DNA of 64,000 nucleotides. Source: Neoechinorhynchus agilis. Its lineage: Eukaryota > Animalia > Acanthocephala. How positions within the stretch are numbered: the first letter of the stretch is position 1; every line of letters starts with the position of its first letter. Shown here in pieces: positions 5,249 to 64,000 of this stretch. The stretch is taken from contig CM121343.1 in NCBI GenBank assembly GCA_051530055.1, forward strand, positions 5,736,389 through 5,800,388, written 5' to 3'. A program made the position numbers and the translations under genes. The notes beneath the pieces were generated by a model, which saw nothing but the letters and a program-made list of their open reading frames with translations, was not told the DNA's origin and made no database searches.

Positions 5249-6115
5249 GCGAATCCTGTCCGCGGTGTTATCGATACTCATTTATTTGAGAAATATTTCA
5301 CAAGGTTTTCCTTGCCTCTTCAGTCGCTATTGCTTGTAAGTTTTAAATGTGTGGATTGCGAATCCTGTCTCCGGTGTTATCGATACTCATTTATTTGAGA
5401 AATATTTCACAAGGTTTTCCTTGCTTCTTCAGTCGCTATTGCTTGTAAGTTTTAAATGTGTGGATTGCGAATCCTGTCTCCGGTGTTATCGATACTCATT
5501 TATTTGAGAAATATTTCACAAGGTTTTCCTTGCCTCTTCAGTCGCTATTGCTTGTAAGTTTTAAATGTGTGGATTGCGAATTCTGTCTCCGGTGTTATCG
5601 ATACTCATTTATTTGAGAAATATTTCACAAGGTTTTCCTTGCCTCTTCAGTCGCTATTGCTTGTAAGTTTTAAATGTGTGGATTGCGAATCCTGTCTCCG
5701 GTGTTATCGATACTCATTTATTTGAGAAATATTTCACAAGGTTTTCCTTGCTTCTTCAGTCGCTATTGCTTGTAAGTTTTAAATGTGTGGATTGCGAATC
5801 CTGTCTCCGGTGTTATCGATACTCATTTATTTGAGAAATATTTCACAAGGTTTTCCTTGCTTCTTCAGTCGCTATTGCTTGTAAGTTTTAAATGTGTGGA
5901 TTGCGAATCCTGTCTCCGGTGTTATCGATACTCATTTATTTGAGAAATATTTCACAAGGTTTTCCTTGCCTCTTCAGTCGCTATTGCTTGTAAGTTTTAA
6001 ATGTGTGGATTGCGAATTCTGTCCCCGGTGTTATCGATACTCATTTAATTGAGAAATATTTCACAAGGTTTTCCTTGCCTCTTCAGTCGCTATTGCTTGT
6101 AATTTTTTAAATATG
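5249..6115. repeat. Tandem array, 8 x 109 bp
   Basis: GCGAAT(C/T)CTGTC recurs at 5249, 5358, 5467, 5576, 5685, 5794, 5903 and 6012. Confidence 0.97.
5288..5327 (-). ncRNA. Minimal type I hammerhead ribozyme (one of 8 copies, one per 109-bp unit)
   Basis: GCGA-CUGAAGA-R-GCAAGG-AAAA-CCUUGU-GAAA-UA-UU-UCUC: full core, 6-bp stem II, palindromic GAAAUAUUUC stem III; stem I is weak (3 of 4 pairs). Confidence 0.7.
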
Positions 6116-6273
6116 TAAGTTCGTCATTTAAAAACTTGCGAAACAATAGCGAGCGAAGAGGCAAGGAAAACCTTGTGAAATATTTCTCAAATAAATGAGT
6201 ATCGATAACACTGGGGACATGATTCACCAACGTACAATAAATCGATTTTATCAGGTATACGTCTTATTTGCTC

Positions 6274-9200
6274 TTAATTTTTTACTACAGTGATATAGTC
6301 ATGCATCATTTCATTGAACAATTTGACAGTTATGTCCACGACATCGCTAACGTCTTGGGTCCAGTCAGACTCGGCTATCATGTCCAACAGTTCTGCGTAT
6401 TTTGGGTGATCGGCATCGCCATAGATCAGAACGGACTCGTATAGAATAATGGCGGCTTCTTGCCGAACTCGAGGTAATTCAGACGATAAAAGTTGTTTCA
6501 GCTTTTCTCCGATCGCCAAATCACATGACGTATTAAATTGGATACTTCGTATGACAATAAATGCCGTGCAGTGTAGCACTGAACTGTTCTTCAGCTGCAA
6601 CGCCGTCTCACATATAAAATCAATCATCCTTTTCATCTTGTGTCCTCCAACTTCATCCACAAACTGCTTCAAAACCTCATAGCTCATGAAGACACGAACA
6701 GTGATCAAGTACTTCAGTAACAATGATCCTTTATCTTTCAAAAGCAACATATACGAAAAAATTGAATCGAATATCTTCCCAATAACTTTCATATTATATT
6801 GGTGGCGTAGCGAGAATTCAAGCAAGCAATCTATAATATGAAAATCTTTACAAATTAAGTCAAAAAGATTTCCATATCCTATTCTTGTAATTTTTGATTG
6901 TGAAGATTGAAGGTTGCAAAGATGAGGTATAAGCCAGTTTAGAGGACCATACTCAACGATGCATATATCCATTATCTTATAATAAAAGCAGAGCTCATCT
7001 TGATTTCGGTTTTTAAGGTATTCGTCCCTCATTTTAGCAATCATTTCAATACTTTGAAGGATCGACCCGTACGTAGCGTCCAATTCGAACAAGGAAAACA
7101 AACCGCGAATATGAACCATGGCCGTATGATCGATTATGCATAGTCCTCCAACCAAGGCTGTTTTGAACATCCTCTGAACTTGATTTGGTATAAATTTGTA
7201 ATGTGGATTTATCGTAAGCCACATATTAAGAAAACTCAACAACTCATTGAACGCAGTTTCTCTTATAATTCTACCGACGTCACCGTTGAGTATTCGGGTC
7301 CTATCGTTCATCATATCAATGAAAAAGTCAAACGCGTACTCAAACAATTGAGTATTATCCGCCTGCATCGATTCGCATAAAATCTGACTAACACACTTGA
7401 TGCCCACGGCTCTTGAATTTATATTTTTCTTGTAAGTGAATTTTTCTCCAACAAGAGATACCAATGTTTCGATAACACGAGAATTCGATCGAAGGAAAGT
7501 TACTGGATAAGAATTGAATAATAAGAAATATCCAGCTCTTACGTGATCATCACTTGGAGAAACACTCTTAGTGCGGACCGAGTGATTCTCGAAGAAATCA
7601 GAGCAATGGGCAGTTTGAACGAGATATGCCTTCGCAGCTTTACAAGCTTCCGATTGAGTATCATCAGATTTGCATTCAATTGACTTAATCGGAGGAATCT
7701 TATGATGCAAGAAAATACAACTGTGGTGAATTTTCGCCTTAAAGAACTTCACTAAAGTAGATCATCCTGTAAACAACAGAACTATTCTTCGATAATTTAA
7801 CGAAAAACTAAATATATAATTGTCTATGAAGTGCAAATTTTCGATCAAAGGAATAAATTCAAACCAACCAGTAACTTATTTAATGCCTAAACGCCGCTTT
7901 TCAACGAAATTCATCTTTGAAATACTGAGTTTAAGTATCTGTAAAGCGTGGGATGCAACATGTTAGTCTCAAAAGACCTCTTCCATCCGTAATCGTGAGG
8001 ATATGCAATGAGAAGGAATGAACTTGAAAAGATGTCGTATTCGATTTTTGTGAAAAACATTAACAAAAATTGTAAGATTCCTCGTCGTAAAGATTAGATC
8101 CTCGCAATCAATCTGCAGCGTATTCTCGCGGTCCCAATCAAATCGCCGAAACTCACAAAGTCGTAAGATGAGGTTTGAGGCCGAATATAAGACATGACAA
8201 GCACTTAAGCACATAGCATCGAATGATTGAGCAATTATACGGAGGAGATTTTTCGATTTTAAGAACAAATCCTCGTTTTCATGTGAGCAGCACAAAAGTG
8301 CACCCAAAAGCATGACTCCACCATGCACGAGGGACACATCGCATATATCCAATTTTTCAATATCAAACAACTCATTGAGCAAAGGTTCGGACTTTTGGTA
8401 TACAATTTCGTAGAAATTAGCAGACACTCTAAACAACGACTGGGCAGCGTTAATTCGAACTTTGGGGTGCCAATGTCTGAGACATACGGTTACTAAGTGA
8501 TTTACGATCACCAGTCTGTAAGGATTTCGAAGAGTCAGGGAAACTCCAAAATCAAATGCAGAAGCAAGGGTCTTTACGTGAGCGGCATCAAGGTCCAAGA
8601 CCACATAATCTTCGTCTCGGTTATCGCGCATGCGACCAGCGAGTTCCTGATAAGCAGCAACCGAGGCTAATCGGCATCTTTCCTCCCGGTCAAATGAAGC
8701 AAGACATAGGAGAACGGAGTGCATTCGCTTCAATGTAGTTTTGTTTCTCACGTTGTAGGATCTCGCAATCGACCAAAGTCCAAAACATACACTGTCGCGG
8801 ACTCCTAATCCGCAGGATACATTTATCAATGCCCGCTCATAAAATGCAAAGTCGCACAAACGGTTTACAACAGAAGGTTGTGAAAATGCGTCGGATTCTT
8901 GTATTCAATCAACGACCAATGCTAATTACCTTCGAAGGATTTCTACTTACTAGATTAATAAAATTTAAAGCTGTAGGAAGCCTCAGGTTCTAAATGTGCT
9001 CGCTAGGAATGCAAAATATTCAATAATCGCCGTCTTTTTCACAATCCTCTTATGACAACTGTCTCAAGGGCGAACGGAGGAATCGTCTTGTGATAGCCCA
9101 GCTCCGCCAGGCAAAGACAACCTCCTAGGACTCTATTAACATCGGATTGGTGTGCAGTTAGTGAGTAAATCCTATTTAAGACTTTTGCAATTTCTTCTTT

Positions 9201-10859
9201 ATCCATAAAGGCCACGATACGTGCCAAGCATTCAGCTCCTTTCCACTTACACGTAAAGTCTCCATTTTCGATGTTTGCGAACATTACACTTTTCGCATAA
9301 AGAAGCAAATGGTCGGCACCTGACTTAGAGGTGGTTTTCTCCCCATTGCTTGTGGAAACCTGCGTCGGCAATATTTGTTCATCAAAGTGTTTTTTATGCA
9401 TAATCATTTCACAAAATCGATTAAGTATCTTCATATCGAAAATCTTAGCTTTAAAATTCGTGCTCATTGACCATTCACGTGCTCGCGACACGCATACATA
9501 CTCGTCCATCAAAAGCTTAGCAATATCGTGGTCCATACATCTTAACATTTCATAGAACAAAACCATCGCAGATTCCAACTTCATATTATCGGACGTTTTT
9601 AAATGGGAAAATACGTCCACTGTAACCGAACATAGGCGAGTGATTGAAATGTCAAATCTATTTAAAAAATATCCAAAGGTTCTTGAAGCGCTGTGGATAC
9701 AGACAGCACGATCGCCATTAATGGAAAACAGTGAACATATATTTAGAATCCTGGACGTTAGAGATGTGGTCTCCATTTGATCTTTTACTTCTATTGCACC
9801 AATGGCGAATGGCGCTTGAATAAGGACTGAAAGCCAATCAAATAGAAACGCGAAAATGTCAGCATGAGTCGAAGCGTCCAAATTTTCAATTATGACTAAG
9901 ATGAGCCAACAAAGAAGTGAAAACACATAAAAACCAAGTGCGTTCAAAAATCTATCTTCGAAATTCAATAATTATGCACCAAACATTTCTGAGATTACTC
10001 ATCATGAAAAACAAGGTGGAGATTATAATCCTCCGGGTGGAAAATATTTTTTGGAAATATTTCGATCGTTAAATTATTGAAAAAAAATGCAAATAAAAAA
10101 TATTTTATATTCTGTTCTCTTATTGGAAATACTACTCTTATTTAAGCATTGAGTTTTTGTTTGGCCCTAAATATTATTAGTAATTAGCGGTACAATGTAC
10201 AAACTCCAATAAGTATCGCGCACACGTGATTGTTATTCTGACGCCGATTGGTTGTAAATACCAGCTTACATTTTAATTGCACTTTTGAGGATGCCGAAAA
10301 TCCAAGAAAGATCCTCATTGGGTAGGGACCAATATCATTGGGTGTTTTAGTGGTAAGAAGAGTAAAACATAGGGTTTTAGATATTAACGGGCACGAATAA
10401 AAATCCAGCGTCCAAAAAAAGTGGAAATGCATTAAAATGTTCTATTTTAATTTGGAAGGACTTTGAGAATGGATTCTTTAGTCGGGAAAATGTTGGCTCG
10501 CTTGGGTCTAAATAGACAACTTTTTCTAAATACTGAATTTCCGTCGGTAAGAACGATCTGAAAACGTTGTAAGAAAGTACTCGTTTGACATGATTGAGCA
10601 TAAGACAAGCCACATATTCTTTTTCCTGAAATTTGCGATTTTCATCAATAGCGGAGGAGACTATATAGACCAGCTTTGGGCAGCCGTCGTTGAGAACACT
10701 GATCAATGGTAATTGGTCGTTATTGAACGCCCGAAGATATGATTCAAAGGAAAAAATAAATGTCCTATGATATTTCCCTTGTTCAGCTTGTGATATGGCA
10801 TCTTTAACTGCCGCGACATCCTCCTCAGATACAGGCTCAAACTTGTTTTCACTGATCAT
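6274..10859 (-). CDS. TBCD: Tubulin-specific chaperone D, multi-exon (ORF blocks 10377-10859, ~10184-10430, 9039-9968, 7969-8859, 6274-7752; exact splice sites not resolved)
   Basis: KWKGAECLARI...GGCLCLAELG, VRDSVCFGLWSIARSY...FDREERCRLASVAAYQELAGR and KRVLSYNVFRSFLPTEI match TBCD HEAT-repeat motifs. Confidence 0.9.
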
Positions 10860-12826: not shown

Positions 12827-12995
12827 TCTCTAGTATGTGGAATTATTGTTTAGAAGTGTACACCCGCGGTAAATGATTATTTCGATTAAAGAGACATTCC
12901 GAACCTTTTCCCGCGAGTGTAGACTTCTAAACAATAATTCTCTAATCACATTCCCCCCGGTACCTCCTCGCACATATCGACATCTCTAGTATGTG
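12827..12995 (+). mobile_element. Foldback element A1 (internally deleted), with 13-bp TSD
   Basis: TCTCTAGTATGTG at 12827-12839 and 12983-12995; arms GAATTATTGTTTAGAAGT / ACTTCTAAACAATAATTC; 42-nt tail ending ...CCTCCTCGCACATATCGACA, shared with A2-A4. Confidence 0.85.
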
Positions 12996-18170: not shown

Positions 18171-18397
18171 GTCGATATGTGAAAGGAGGTTCCGGGGAAT
18201 GTGATTAGACTTATTTTCTAGAAGTCTTTACCCGGTAAATGGTTTTTTCGATTAAAGACGTTCTGTGAACCTTGTCAGGTTCATCATCCTTGTTCAAAAC
18301 TTACTAACAAACTAAGATGATGAATCCCTTACGAGGTTCGCAGAACGTCTTAAATAAAAACCAATTTTCCAAGTGAAGACTTCCAAACAATAATTCC
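18171..18397 (-). mobile_element. Foldback element A2 (two antiparallel HHR-derived arms with altered cores)
   Basis: Tail GTCGATATG...GGGAATGTGATTAG followed by a ~190-nt imperfect palindrome; flanking direct repeat CAATAATTCCAAAGCG(A/G)TGG at 18147-18166 and 18388-18407. Confidence 0.85.
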
Positions 18398-51953: not shown

Positions 51954-54900
51954 CTATTCGCTTTCATCACTTCCGTTTTGCCAATGTCCACCGGCTTCAG
52001 CGGTGGTACCAAGTCCATATTCCGGCCTGTATTGTTCGTCCACAACTGTTTCCGATACGTCTTCGTCATCCGGTCGAATCACTGCCGATATGAAATGATC
52101 CATCGCGTTGTTGATGTCGTTGGCACACTTGCAAAGATCCGTAAATGACAACTTTTGCACACTAGACAATTCATTATCCAATTCCCAATGATTTATGTGA
52201 TCCGATGGCATGTCTTTCGCCATGATTGGAGGTGACATTGAGCGTCCCGTCTTATATGATGCACCTTTTGCATTCAAATTTGATGCAGACATAAATCGTA
52301 ACTAATCATGTCGAAAATAACAAAACAATAAGCGAATAGAGTATATACAGACCCCTTCATAAGACCGGTCAACACTTCCGTTACCATAATTATAGGATCT
52401 CGTTTTATTTAGTCGTTGCCGGAGCTGCCGAAGTTGTAAGTCTAATCGCACATTCTGTAGCTCCACAAGCCTCATTCTATTATCTATCTTATCCCTGCAG
52501 TGAACAATGCTTTCCCTATCGACTTTGTTTGTCTGCTGACTATTACTGCTAGCATTGTTGATTAAATCAAAGCAACTGCGGCAGTGTCCGGCTAAAAGCT
52601 TTTTGCATTCGTTCCTTAGTTCTCGGTTTTCGTGCTCTAATTGAAAGATAGTCCTCTCGACCAAAAGATCGTGTGTATTGCAAGTAAGGCGTTCTTCGCA
52701 GTCAGTTGCTTTAGCTCTTGCGTGCTCATTATACAGCTCACCATTTATTTCGGATGTTATGCTCGCTCCGGGTGGAAAGGTACTTCTTGGTGTTATCGCA
52801 CGGACTCATGCATTATGGGTTACAATTAGTAAAAAAACAAGAAATTATTTCCTCAATCTCCATAAGCCCGTGCTTTTATTCGCGCATCATTTCCAGCGAT
52901 TGGTATTTCATCATTGACCAGTGCTGCATCCATTCCCATCAATACGAGCGTTGAATTCCTGCCATCATGGTCAAAATTTCGAGGAAGAGGAAGGTACCCA
53001 AGACGCCGAATTCCGTCAGTGCCGATTCTAGCTCCGCATATGGCAGTAGTCGCGATTGAACCAGCGCACTGGAAATGAGATCCGTTCATGGGACCGGTTT
53101 TTTTTAGCTTATTTAGAATCACACGAACGAAATCTTTAAAATTGTCAGCGGACGTTGTCTAAAGAGGTGTTAGTGTGTACAAAAACGCGGTAAATTTTAC
53201 CTCAATATAATACTCATGGAGTGGATCATCAATCTTGAATCTATTGTTTTGCTTCGCGAATAAAAAGCAGTGCTGGCAAACATCGAAGTTAAACCGCCGA
53301 AGCGATCGGTAACTTTATTCAAAGTAGCACATAGTGAGCTCGTTTCATTCTCCATATCTAACAATGCTTACCGAAAACCAACCATCGGATACTGTTTACA
53401 GACGTTACATTTCGCTTGGTGCATGGTCTGCTCACTGACGACTAAACGATGCATGACCGGTAACCAAACAAGGGATTGTGGCTCCTCTCGCAACCAAGCA
53501 AGAAATTCTTGAATTGTCACACGCATGCAATTGTTTACTATTGGGTCGGATTCACATTTCACCTATACGAAAATTCACTACAAAGAAAAAGCGAGGTGAA
53601 ATACACACGAATTTTATTAAACATCGCAACGATGGCTCGGCTCGACTTCCACCAAACGCGGCAACCTCGCCGAGTAGTTTCGGGATCTACAAATGAGATC
53701 TTTCTGAGCTTCAAGTCGACAAATTGGTTTACAGACTATCAGTGCGCTCTCAATAATAATGCAAAATACATTTATAGAAATGGTCTGTTCCAGTTTATTA
53801 AGACTTGCGGTCTCATATATATCTAGAAAATAATGCCGATGGTTCAGATGAAATAGATAACGGTTGACCTACACTTGTACTTATCGTCCAAATTGGCTTG
53901 GCACATGATTGCTAAAGCTACTTTAAATGAATAGATATTTAAGAATCCGTTCCTATTCCTTAGGTTCATTGAGTAGTATGTGCGGTTCCAAAGATTGCTG
54001 CGAAAATAGAGTTAAATAATGGAGCATGTTTCTGCGTCCTATTCTGCAATATTAATTGTTTATAGGATAATTGTTAAGAATACAAAGGTGAAAAAAAAGA
54101 AATTTCAAAGACTGCCAACATATCCTTAACACCAAAGCTCGAATTGAAAAACTATTGCTAAATAAAATAGATGAAAACGTCGATATGCGAGGAGGTACCG
54201 GGGGAATGTGATTAGAATTATTATTTAGAAGTCTTCACCCGGAAAATTAGTGTTTATTAAAGACGTTCTGCGAACCTCGTAAGAGGTTCATCATCTTAGT
54301 TTGTTAGTAATAGACGCAACCAACAAACTGAGATGATGACCCCTTACGAGGTTCACAGAACGTCTTTAATAAAAACTAATTTTCCAAGTGAAGATTTCCA
54401 AACAATAATTCCAAAATAAGAGCCGAATAACGGATTGAACGTATTGTATCGTTTCCCGCATATGAATATTTTTCGAGTTCAGGTGAATTCGCGTACTTTT
54501 TTACTTCGAAAACAAAAAAAATTACGGTTTTCGCATGATCAGAACCGCATGGATTATTTAAGGGAGATTAATAAAATCGATTTAAGTATAATCAGAGACA
54601 CCGCGATCGGATTTATGTGATTGCGCGACTTAGCAAAAAGGGCAAAAACCAGTGGTAATCGCTTGAAAGATGAAAATCAGCAACCATTTGCCTATTTGGG
54701 CGTCATAGTACGCAGAAATATCATCGATTATTTCACTCAAAATTCAACAAGTGAATTGTCGTACTCATCGTATAAATTTAAAAGCCAATTCAGGCACAAG
54801 TCAGTGGCCAAGGGTACATTGATAGTGGACATTGGATATGCCACTGCAGCCGCTTCATACATTCTTCGTAACACAGTCAATATACGCGTTGCGCTCACGG

Positions 54901-60854: not shown

Positions 60855-61872
60855 AACTATCGGATTGTGATTATCATGTCCGTTATCGCACTGTGGACCA
60901 ACATACAGAAGTGACGACCTCATTACCACCCCCCCCTCGCGCGCTCGGATATGTTTGTGGTTCGCTATTTGCGCGCTATTCCACAGCTTCCATCCAGTTT
61001 AGTTACGACTTTGCGGACGGTTTCAGAAAATGGACGCTGATGAAGTATGTGTTTTGTCGGGTATTCAGGACGATCAGAGTACCATTCAACTTTTCGAGAA
61101 GCAGGTTAGATCGTCTTCTGAGGGATTTGTTTGAACTCTTTTTAGGATCATTATCTTTCGTTCGGTTGCAGTGCCATTAAGCTTGCCAAGCACTATTTTA
61201 AATCGCCGACTGCTTTGTCAACCACAAATTTGGAAGGTAACTTCTCCTCATTCGCACAGTGCAACTTAATTTCATACAGGTCAGTCGGTGAAATCGTGTT
61301 GTATCAAAAAATCAGCGCTGGAGAGCGTTTTGCACTTCATATTGAACCGAATGCTGTGTCGGGTGGAGATTTGGAGTGAAACTAAGCAACTGAAAAAGAA
61401 ACTTTTATGTATAGTTAGTTTAATGATCTTTGCCTTATTATGAAGATCATCTACATTATTGGCATCACCCGGAAACATTGGTGAAATCGAGGAGTATTTA
61501 GCCACAATGAATCTTGATTCAACCGACATTCATTCGTTTTATGGAGATGGCGACATTTTGTCGTTTTGCGCTAAAACCGATGATACAGCCAAAGGCCATC
61601 GACATGGAACCGTAAGTTCTGCCTACCTTGTCCTCTTAAATTTCTTACCTTACGTTGATTTGCTCCAAAAAGCAATACTAAAATCCCATCAATTATTGAT
61701 TTTGTAGCACGTCCTAAGAATAATTAGTTTAAAATTTTTTGTCATGGATATATATTTTTTGTTTGGTAATGAGAAATAGAGATTAAAAGGTAGGTCAGGA
61801 GGGTGGCACCCTGTTTCTACCTTTTAGACCTGAAAATGTCTGACGAAATTTTGTGAAAGGAAATCAATAAAT

Positions 61873-62118
61873 TAATCTCTATTTGGAATTATTCTTTAGG
61901 TCGTCACCTAGTAAATAATTGTTTATTGAAGACGTTTCGAACCTCGTCGGGTTCATCATCCATGTGCAAAACTTACTAACAAACTGATGATTATGATGAA
62001 CCCGACGAAGTTCGAAACGTCTTTTTGATAAATAATCATTTACCGCGGGTGTAGACCTAAGCAATAATTCCAATCACATTCCCCGGTACTTCCTCACATA
62101 TTGTCATAATCTCTATTT
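61873..62118 (+). mobile_element. Foldback element A4, with 12-bp TSD
   Basis: TAATCTCTATTT at 61873-61884 and 62107-62118; both arms carry GAACC-CGACGA-(G/A)GTTC-GAAACGTC; 35-nt tail; both CUGAUGA halves are damaged. Confidence 0.88.
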
Positions 62119-62284
62119 CCCATTACCAAACAAGAAATAAGAATAACTGGAAATTCATTAGACCGATTTGACACGCAGTATTCCGAGACCGTTTCTGTTT
62201 ATTCGATTAGGTGTGATTGGAGTTAGGTGATTAGCGATCGATTAGCAATTTCATCCACGAACACTCATTTTACCCCAAATATAC

Positions 62285-62526
62285 ACAAATAAAAATGTTG
62301 CTGAGGTGATTCCTACTCTCCTGACAATAAAGATATTGATTTATTGCGATATTTCGCTGGGCAAATCCAGCATTCTCAAGCAATTTTGGATTAATGCTTG
62401 AGAATGCCGGATTTGCCCAATGAAATATCGCAATAAATCAATATCTTTATTGTCCGGAGAGTAGGAATCACGTCAGCAACACTATAATACCTCCGAGGAA
62501 CCTTTTACATCAGACAAACAAAAATG
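62285..62526 (+). mobile_element. Foldback element B (unrelated in sequence to A): near-perfect 186-nt hairpin, 33-nt tail, 13-bp TSD
   Basis: Arms 62296-~62382 and ~62395-62481 differ at about 5 positions; ACAAA(T/C)AAAAATG at 62285-62297 and 62514-62526. Confidence 0.85.
62343..62384 (-). ncRNA. Minimal type I hammerhead with the U3-A8 core covariant
   Basis: AUUGC-UUGAGAA-U-GCUGG-AUUUGC-CCAGC-GAAA-UA-UC-GCAAU: perfect 5-bp stems I and II, AUC site. Confidence 0.75.
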
Positions 62527-64000
62527 ACTGGTAAATGAGTAGATTTTTAAAGCAGCACAGCGTTTGGGAAATCAGACATTGAAGATCACTTCCTCAAGAT
62601 GAACGAAATTTGATCGAATTTACGTATAGATCGTTGACGTCTGCATTTTCAACGAGAGCGAGCAAATTTTCAAAGTTTCTCGACTGTACGACGATGAAAG
62701 CTTTATCAAATTAGAGGTTCGTTTTCAATTTGTTATTAAATGTATAACTTTTTTGCCAAATTTTGTTGCAGCATTTAATCGTTCAACACTGTATCAAGGA
62801 AATCGTATATACGTGCGACCCTTACTTTTATTCGCGAGTTCGCGAAATGTTGAAGCCCTTCGCTTCTAGCTCCCTTATTGAGGAAGTGAGAAAAAAATCA
62901 TGTATGTCTAAAATCAATATCGATAATCTACAATTCTGTTGTCATCTATCCGTTTAGTCGCTGATTGTTACGACGGCGAAAACTGTGCACTGGCCTCCAT
63001 TTTATCAAGTCATTCTCTTTCTCTCTTAAAGATCGATGGTATGCTGTGGTCTCGCACCACTTCTTCGCTTTAGCATAATTCCGTTTTATTAAGATTCAAT
63101 TGTCCGGAATGCCATCATTCCCATAAGGCTGATTTGTGATAAAAATAAAGTAAGAACCGTTAAATCGCTTTATGCGCTTAGAGTTATCTTTACAAGTTAC
63201 TTACAAGTTGCTCTTCTAACTGCTACGAGATCGAATCCCTAAATACGGAATTATTTGTGAAATTAGAACCTAGGTCATCAAGTGTCGAGGTGACTCCTTA
63301 CCGTCATAGAATTTCAACAAGTTCCGTGAAAATTTGATTTAGGAGTTTCATTGGCACAGTACCCTCTGGCCCTTAAATAGGGATTCGGGTTTAAATCCAC
63401 TTGACCACCTCAACACAACTACGGAATGTACAAACTCAGCCAATTTTATACCTCGGGGAGAAGAGGTCACCACAGTAAAGTTCTGGCACGTGCTAAAAGC
63501 TGAAATTTCTAGAAAATAGAATCATTTTTCATTTGTAATAATTACGATTGACTGTATGAGTGAAATATACTTTCTTTTTGGTGATGTGAAAAAATCTTCA
63601 GTATTCGCCTTGAAACAAAATATAGCAAGTCCACGCAAAAGTCCACTGATTAAATTATTTATCTTCCGACGCTTGCTATAGGCAATAAAATTTGAAAAAT
63701 TTGTTTTTTATTAAGTACACATTGTTTTCTGAGTACTGGTTATTCATTGTAGAACAGTTTGATATAGTCTTTCAAAACAATTGTATTAAACTAAATATTT
63801 GTAAAGATGTTATCTATAGATTGTTTTCGTCAAGACAAAATAAGGAACATTATTTAATTTTATTCATATTTCGTCCTCTAACGTGGGACTTGAAAATTGT
63901 TAAAAAATATTGAGAAATAATAGAGTTACGTAGGTTTCTCCGCAATGGAAGTTCACTCGCGAAAAAAAATATATAAGCTATAAATCTTTGTTATCTTTAC

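Follow-up and report, generated by a model that had tools for sequence, protein, structure and literature searches.

A U3-A8 hammerhead motif in a probable Penelope-type foldback within an intron of the acanthocephalan Neoechinorhynchus agilis

The closest described relatives of the motif reported here are the minimal hammerhead ribozymes (min-HHRs) of metazoan Penelope-like elements (PLEs). They are type I hammerheads without helix III, in which helix I measures 4-5 bp and helix II usually 6-8 bp, and dimers are their expected active form (Cervera & De la Peña 2014, PMC4209133). Their consensus includes an extra nucleotide between A9 and 10.1, a G10.1-C11.1 pair and palindromic positions 15.x-16.x, and their cleavage in vitro is weak (PMC4209133). 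Covariation of the core pair to U3-A8 was described in the same study for the Cercyon PLEs of Schistosoma mansoni, as were dual min-HHRs lying near each other on opposite strands; solo truncated PLE copies are the rule in the literature (PMC4209133). Among acanthocephalans, HHR-bearing PLEs are also on record for Pomphorhynchus laevis (Craig et al. 2021, PMC8557442).

PLE insertions leave a recognizable signature. Strong 5' truncation is typical, an inverted truncated copy sits beside the sense copy, a tail of 30-40 bp is often present at one end only and the hammerhead is found near the 3' end (PMC8557442). The Poseidon enzyme of Anolis cuts and extends both DNA strands, and its reverse transcription has two start sites, a tail-length apart (PMC11167929). 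In the same system, insertion in vitro persists when the HHR of the element is mutated, and RNA ends at the cut site were not observed (PMC11167929). Metazoan non-LTR retrozymes form another class of hammerhead-bearing repeats; their units of about 170-400 nt stand in direct tandem, bear type I HHRs and are expressed as circular RNA (Cervera & De la Peña 2020, PMC7229834). They have been proposed to derive from the pLTRs of PLEs, and in most of those described the HHR is canonical, with loop-loop contacts (PMC7229834; Li et al. 2026, 10.64898/2026.07.22.740005).

Architecture of the intronic foldback

The window analysed here is a stretch of 64,000 nucleotides of N. agilis DNA, with positions counted from its first letter. 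Its large ORFs are host genes (TBCD, WD40, MBD/WSD and eIF4E). RNA contigs join 61611 to 62630, which marks a precisely spliced GT-AG intron, 1,018 nt long, within a plus-strand gene that is expressed; a further join, from 62714 to 62770, bounds the next intron (62715-62769), which is only 55 nt long. Two foldbacks, A and B, occupy 439 nt, or 43%, of the longer intron. The intron and the parts of element B are as follows, with the evidence for each in parentheses.

61612-62629, plus strand: host intron, GTAAGT...TATAG, containing foldbacks A and B (RNA contigs, splice sites)
62286-62297, unstranded: left copy of the target-site duplication (TSD), 12 bp, CAAATAAAAATG (direct repeat)
62298-62382, minus strand: left arm, a 5'-truncated copy with its sense on the minus strand, without tail (inverted repeat; nhmmer)
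62343-62384, minus strand: intact minimal type I hammerhead motif; core pair U3-A8 (parse, scan, shuffles)
62383-62394, unstranded: head-to-head junction, the loop of the hairpin (overlaps the 5' strand of helix I of both copies)
62393-62434, plus strand: decayed second copy of the hammerhead, which retains its U3-A8 core (parse, fold, reads)
62395-62481, plus strand: right arm, a 5'-truncated copy with its sense on the plus strand (inverted repeat; nhmmer)
62482-62514, plus strand: one-sided tail of 33 nt (read depth; alignment to the inter-unit part of family C)
62515-62526, unstranded: right copy of the TSD, 12 bp, CAAACAAAAATG (direct repeat)

Element B is an insertion unit of 217 bp (62298-62514). 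Its arms, whose limits were set after trimming AT-rich chance matches, form a near-perfect inverted repeat with 5 mismatches and a 12-nt spacer (left versus right arm, nhmmer E=5e-21), and as RNA either strand is predicted to form one long hairpin (MFE -146/-140 kcal/mol, z about -24). Family-level read depth begins at the left TSD copy (62286-62297) and extends beyond the inverted repeat as far as about 62515. The TSD copies are identical at 11 of 12 positions, CAAA(T/C)AAAAATG, and exactly flank the repeated unit. Inverted 5'-truncated copies, a tail at one end and a TSD together reproduce the PLE insertion signature. Furthermore, one arm with a tail and the other without is what two reverse-transcription start sites combined with extension of both strands would leave behind (PMC11167929). 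The assignment to PLEs rests on this architecture and on the type of motif, as a PLE RT/GIY-YIG ORF was not found in the window; nor did nhmmer find family B copies in the window besides the two arms.

Element B can be compared with both kinds of published repeat. Like PLE insertions (PMC8557442, PMC11167929), it combines an inverted truncated copy with a sense copy, has a one-sided tail and carries its HHR near the 3' end; the cut site lies 52 and 85 nt from the ends, distances comparable to the 85-92 nt or so implied by the PAc description. Unlike them, it holds only the terminal 87-120 nt per copy, and no parent element was seen. With retrozymes it shares a short, ORF-less repeat bearing a type I hammerhead, and some family B copies occur as neighbouring units. 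However, its HHR is minimal, and at this locus the arrangement is an inverted pair instead of the direct tandem repeats of about 170-400 nt that characterize retrozymes.

Sequence and fold of the motif

An earlier note on this DNA had drawn attention to UUGAGAA in place of CUGANGA in both arms, and the heptamer is indeed present at 62398-62404 on the plus strand and at 62379-62373 on the minus strand (ttctcaa at 62373-62379 when read on the plus strand). Because the two arms belong to one palindrome, its occurrence on both strands is automatic and does not constitute two independent observations. The core boxes are complete in both arms (UUGAGAA / GAA / A...U / C17, with a U3-A8 pair), and a single unpaired U (62372 on the minus strand, 62405 on the plus strand) stands after A9 and before 10.1.

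The minus-strand copy, read from 62384 to 62343, parses into AUUGC, UUGAGAA, U, GCUGG-AUUUGC-CCAGC, GAA, AUAU, C and GCAAU, and is antisense to the host gene. Helix I (AUUGC/GCAAU) has all 5 of its 5 bp paired and is open-ended, as in type I hammerheads, and helix II (GCUGG/CCAGC) is a perfect 5-bp stem closed by the pair G10.1-C11.1, in line with the perfect stems I and II that the note had described. GAA provides G12-A14, and A15.1 and U16.1 fall inside the loop-less palindrome AUAU, which corresponds to helix III; C17 comes next and leads into the 3' strand of helix I. The cut is predicted to fall 3' of C17, between positions 62348 and 62347 of the minus strand. Each of helices I and II is contained within one arm, so neither owes its pairing to the palindrome. 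The plus-strand copy has the broken stem II that had been reported for it (GCCGG/CCAAU, with 2 of 5 pairs lost), and its helix I retains 4 of 5 pairs, with one internal mismatch.

Folded in isolation, the minus-strand 42-mer adopts helices I and II as its MFE structure (-11.8 kcal/mol), and the plus-strand copy gives no hammerhead fold (-0.7 kcal/mol). The MFE homodimer pairs the AUAU segments at -24.6 versus 2 x -11.8 kcal/mol, a computed dimerisation gain of only about 1 kcal/mol for a helix III that, in the dimer, would comprise four A-U pairs. When the whole arm is folded, a downstream 8-bp hairpin takes the 3' strand of helix I.

Much of this recalls the min-HHRs of PLEs (PMC4209133): a type I topology, a palindrome for helix III, a short helix I, a U3-A8 pair as in Cercyon, the unpaired nucleotide between A9 and 10.1 and the G10.1-C11.1 pair, together with many dispersed, mostly truncated copies and paired motifs on opposite strands. 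Element B departs from them in its acanthocephalan host, in a helix II of 5 bp versus 6-8 bp, in having no RT/EN ORF nearby and in the truncation of both of its copies right at the 5' edge of the motif. A further parallel exists with the double hammerheads of newt satellite 2 and ASBVd which use pairing of two copies to compensate for an unstable helix III (Forster et al. 1988, as cited in PMC4209133). Helix III of those RNAs is 2-3 bp plus a loop, whereas in element B AUAU alone lies between A14 and C17. Sequence, structure and family context support a natural U3-A8 hammerhead motif at 62384 to 62343, as the note had proposed. The U3-A8 pair is isosteric with the C3-G8 pair that it replaces, and the motif fits the PLE min-HHR consensus in three features that had not been used in that proposal.

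Related families and genomic copies

A profile built from the arms finds a homologous family, C, at the other end of the window, where eight tandem 109-nt units (5249-6116, minus strand) are accompanied by one inverted unit (6134-6242, plus strand). The tandem units are 98% alike and read AGCGA, CUGAAGA, G, GCAAGG-AAAA-CCUUGU, GAA, AUAU and U, with a C3-G8 core, a fully paired 6-bp helix II, U17 and a weak helix I. At the 5' end of the array stands the inverted unit, in head-to-head orientation and with a degenerate core, GCGAAGA. The outermost two units have a common 3' end, unlike the internal unit junctions, and the array adjoins TBCD-like ORFs (7969-9968, minus strand).

The plus arm and tail of element B align with two family C units at z=6.3, with 0 of 2000 shuffles as good. 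The alignment spans a GAAA box, the arm and then the tail, such that homology lies 3' of the GAAA box and the tail of B falls on the inter-unit part of family C. The 3-8 pair is U-A in family B and C-G in family C, and the letters of helix II differ between them with pairing intact. From this comparison, and from the intact helix II of the family B read majority, selection on the fold in the source lineage has modest support, the change in the core pair counting as one event. A stringent local alignment of the left arm of B with a foldback at 6014-6225 was also tried and was set aside as unconvincing (62 of 2000 shuffles as good), and alignment of family B with family A did not reach significance.

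Family A is represented in the same intron by foldback A (61885-62106), which is built on the plan of B, with a 33-nt one-sided tail (62074-62106) and a perfect 12-bp TSD, TAATCTCTATTT, at 61873-61884 and 62107-62118. The family carries a canonical C3-G8 min-HHR and numbers about 170-260 copies by depth; its junction differs from copy to copy, and the reads show a large number of distinct joints and loose ends. In foldback A the right-arm hammerhead is interrupted near 61987 by 6 extra letters, which are absent in 68% of the family reads. A solo intact motif of this family at 27061-27020 on the minus strand parses into AAGAA, CUGAUGA, U, GAACC-CGACGA-GGUUC, GAA, ACGU and C. More family A foldbacks lie at 12840-12940, 18246-18360 and 54212-54414; their cores are degenerate, for instance CAGAACGUC versus CGAAACGUC. 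A 33-nt inverted repeat (94%; 61753-61785 and 62107-62139) brackets foldback A. Once A and one TSD copy are subtracted, this repeat would make an older hairpin with a spacer of about 87 nt, and foldback A seems to have landed in an arm of that earlier foldback.

The extent of family B was estimated from WGS reads laid on the locus at 80% likeness. Depth is about 14 over the single-copy flank, about 400 over the arms and about 690 over 62444-62511, a ratio that suggests about 30-50 copies. At the plus-strand copy, the read majority is T at 62408 (82%), G at 62420 (68%) and C at 62421 (93%); helix II of the family is therefore the intact GCUGG/CCAGC, of which the local plus copy is a decayed version. 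Judged by read majorities, the right arm has 4 changes and the left arm 1, at 62322; the only other difference of the left arm, at 62380, is one on which the family itself is divided. Chance could account for a 42-nt motif left unchanged in that arm.

Among the variants listed from the reads, 62380 G>A (58%) in helix I and 62370 G>A (36%) in helix II of the minus motif convert G-C to G-U pairs, the sites 62362 and 62415 belong to loop 2, and 62359 G>C (25%) would break a pair unless compensated. Core positions, 3 and 8 included, have no variant among those listed, although minority variation at 3 and 8 may exist and the family is young enough for shared ancestry alone to explain an unchanged core. 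The idea that host selection had disabled the sense-strand copy was considered, as helix II takes 3 of its 4 changes (nominal P about 0.006, rising to about 0.04 with the adjacent pair taken as one event). It was left aside as unsupported: the idea is post hoc, folding would in any case be prevented by the hairpin, and some plus-copy letters are common to other family B copies in the reads.

Origin, activity and significance

Element B is probably the scar of an insertion by a PLE, or by a relative that uses PLE machinery, carrying a min-HHR with a U3-A8 core. A single insertion by such a retroelement, or by a non-autonomous relative dependent on the PLE machinery, would have produced the unit at 62298-62514. 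Two severely 5'-truncated cDNA copies of the 3' region of its RNA would have been joined head to head, one of them keeping the extra 33-nt tail, with the 12-bp target duplication flanking the whole. Each copy would start with the minimal type I hammerhead of the element, whose core pair is U3-A8 in place of C3-G8. By analogy with the published PLE min-HHRs, such a motif, without a helix III of its own, would be active only when two sense copies share an AUAU-paired helix III. Tandem or multimeric transcripts of the source element could supply these two copies, with a cut after C17, and we infer that the motif would be catalytic and would have a role in processing the source transcript. A helix II of 5 bp, a helix III of four A-U pairs and the small gain on dimerisation count against this explanation, as do the low activity of PLE HHRs in vitro and the fact that insertion in vitro can dispense with them.

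The strongest competitor, which we nevertheless regard as unlikely, holds that foldback B is itself the multiplying unit, an ORF-less and PLE-dependent hairpin element resembling a SINE or a retrozyme. No less doubtful is its fuller form, a self-contained hairpin with a U3-A8 hammerhead on each strand, as in viroid-like RNAs, which PLE enzymes would copy as a unit. Both derive from the junction shared among paralogues and from read joints between neighbouring units. Depth across the B junction bin (62376-62409) is about 80% of arm depth, as against about a third at the family A junction, and two paralogous DNA contigs span the centre of B, at 62339-62430 (5 differences) and 62343-62447. In addition, a joint from 62515 back to 62296, with the 12 letters TAATATTTGTTC in between, occurs in about 113 WGS reads as well as in a DNA contig and an RNA contig, and some family B foldback units are therefore adjacent or in tandem elsewhere in the genome. 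An arm with its tail (about 122 nt) is also about one unit of the homologous 109-nt tandem family C. However, the PLE mechanism, with its two RT start sites and extension of both strands, fully accounts for the one-sided tail and the TSD, and shared centres would also result from a short RNA template whose 5' end is fixed or from later segmental duplication. The depth bins are coarse, moreover, and a read from one arm can be placed on the other. Two origins may thus be envisaged for the foldbacks of family B, multiplication as units or formation on a short fixed-end template; if the foldback is the unit, the hammerhead is still real.

A chance resemblance in an ordinary, MITE-like inverted-repeat DNA element was the view taken at first and was dropped in light of the parse, the shuffles and the PLE literature; we now consider it improbable by a wide measure. 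It draws on the fact that a palindrome brings stems free and that the core boxes are short. Both strands of the window were scanned for cores that pair (C3G8, U3A8) and for cores that do not (C3A8, U3G8). The minus copy was the sole U3-A8 motif, and no non-pairing C3/A8 or U3/G8 motif passed the scan on either strand of the window. With a relaxed descriptor, 0.04 matches are found per shuffled 64-kb window, which implies many chance matches per genome. In contrast, a strict descriptor (helix I of at least 5 bp, helix II of at least 5 bp and a palindromic helix III) gave one U3-A8 match in the window versus none in 300 dinucleotide shuffles of it. Coincidence must also contend with helices that are local to one arm, with the additional PLE-consensus features of the motif and with a 33-nt tail that makes element B asymmetric, unlike a TIR element. 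Furthermore, two other foldback or tandem families in the window have the same motif plan with C3-G8, and one of them, family C, keeps the fold with other letters.

The stability of the hairpin, far greater than that of the ribozyme fold, and the silence of Rfam would also fit coincidence. No hammerhead was matched across the whole window at the gathering threshold or around element B at E<=10. The positive control fails as well, as the canonical C3-G8 min-HHR at 27061-27020 is likewise missed by the Rfam models at E<=10. This silence is therefore uninformative and is not evidence against the motif; the Rfam hammerhead models do not reach motifs without helix III. The last alternative, in which the long hairpin RNA matters as a source of small RNAs (hpRNA/siRNA directed at the family) and the ribozyme motif is incidental, appears very improbable. 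In its favour are the near-perfect hairpin with arms of about 85 bp, its transcription within the intron and, around element B, sub-threshold matches to many generic miRNA-precursor models that reflect its shape. Against it, all these matches score far under gathering values (best 75 versus 245 bits, another 54 versus 83, the rest below as well), and RNA contig depth over it is low (about 7-40 versus 99 for exons) and comes partly from paralogues.

On the preferred reading of a PLE-type insertion scar, the copy in the intron is most likely an inert relic, being intronic, locked in a long hairpin and present as one sense copy per transcript, with its plus copy decayed. A transcript of the foldback contains one sense and one antisense copy, so that no dimer can form in cis at the locus. 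By the computed energies, the 85-bp hairpin would outcompete the ribozyme fold and sequester the motif. Action at the locus is unlikely given this competition, the single sense copy, a dimer gain of about 1 kcal/mol and the loss of a helix I strand to the 8-bp hairpin.

These considerations bear on two broader claims of the note that are not supported. Selection for catalysis cannot be read from this locus, as the arms stem from one insertion event, the plus copy has decayed, the hairpin would sequester the motif and no dimer can form in cis. Nor is rarity of the double change in nature supported, a U3-A8 descriptor having about 1,300 matches in the S. mansoni genome (PMC4209133). The accompanying point that CUGANGA-only descriptors miss the motif is sound and is also in print (PMC4209133). 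Indeed, the U3-A8 variant, its PLE carrier and its escape from CUGANGA searches were all published in 2014 (PMC4209133), and element B is a new example, not a new kind.

Taken together, these observations leave the general understanding of hammerheads and Penelope-like elements unchanged, and they add a thorny-headed worm to the animals with a U3-A8 hammerhead core in Penelope-type repeats. Family B, with its U-A pair, and family C, with C-G and a compensated helix II, offer a clean natural comparison by which the 3-8 base pair can be tested. In the host, a correctly spliced intron can consist to 43% of two such insertions.
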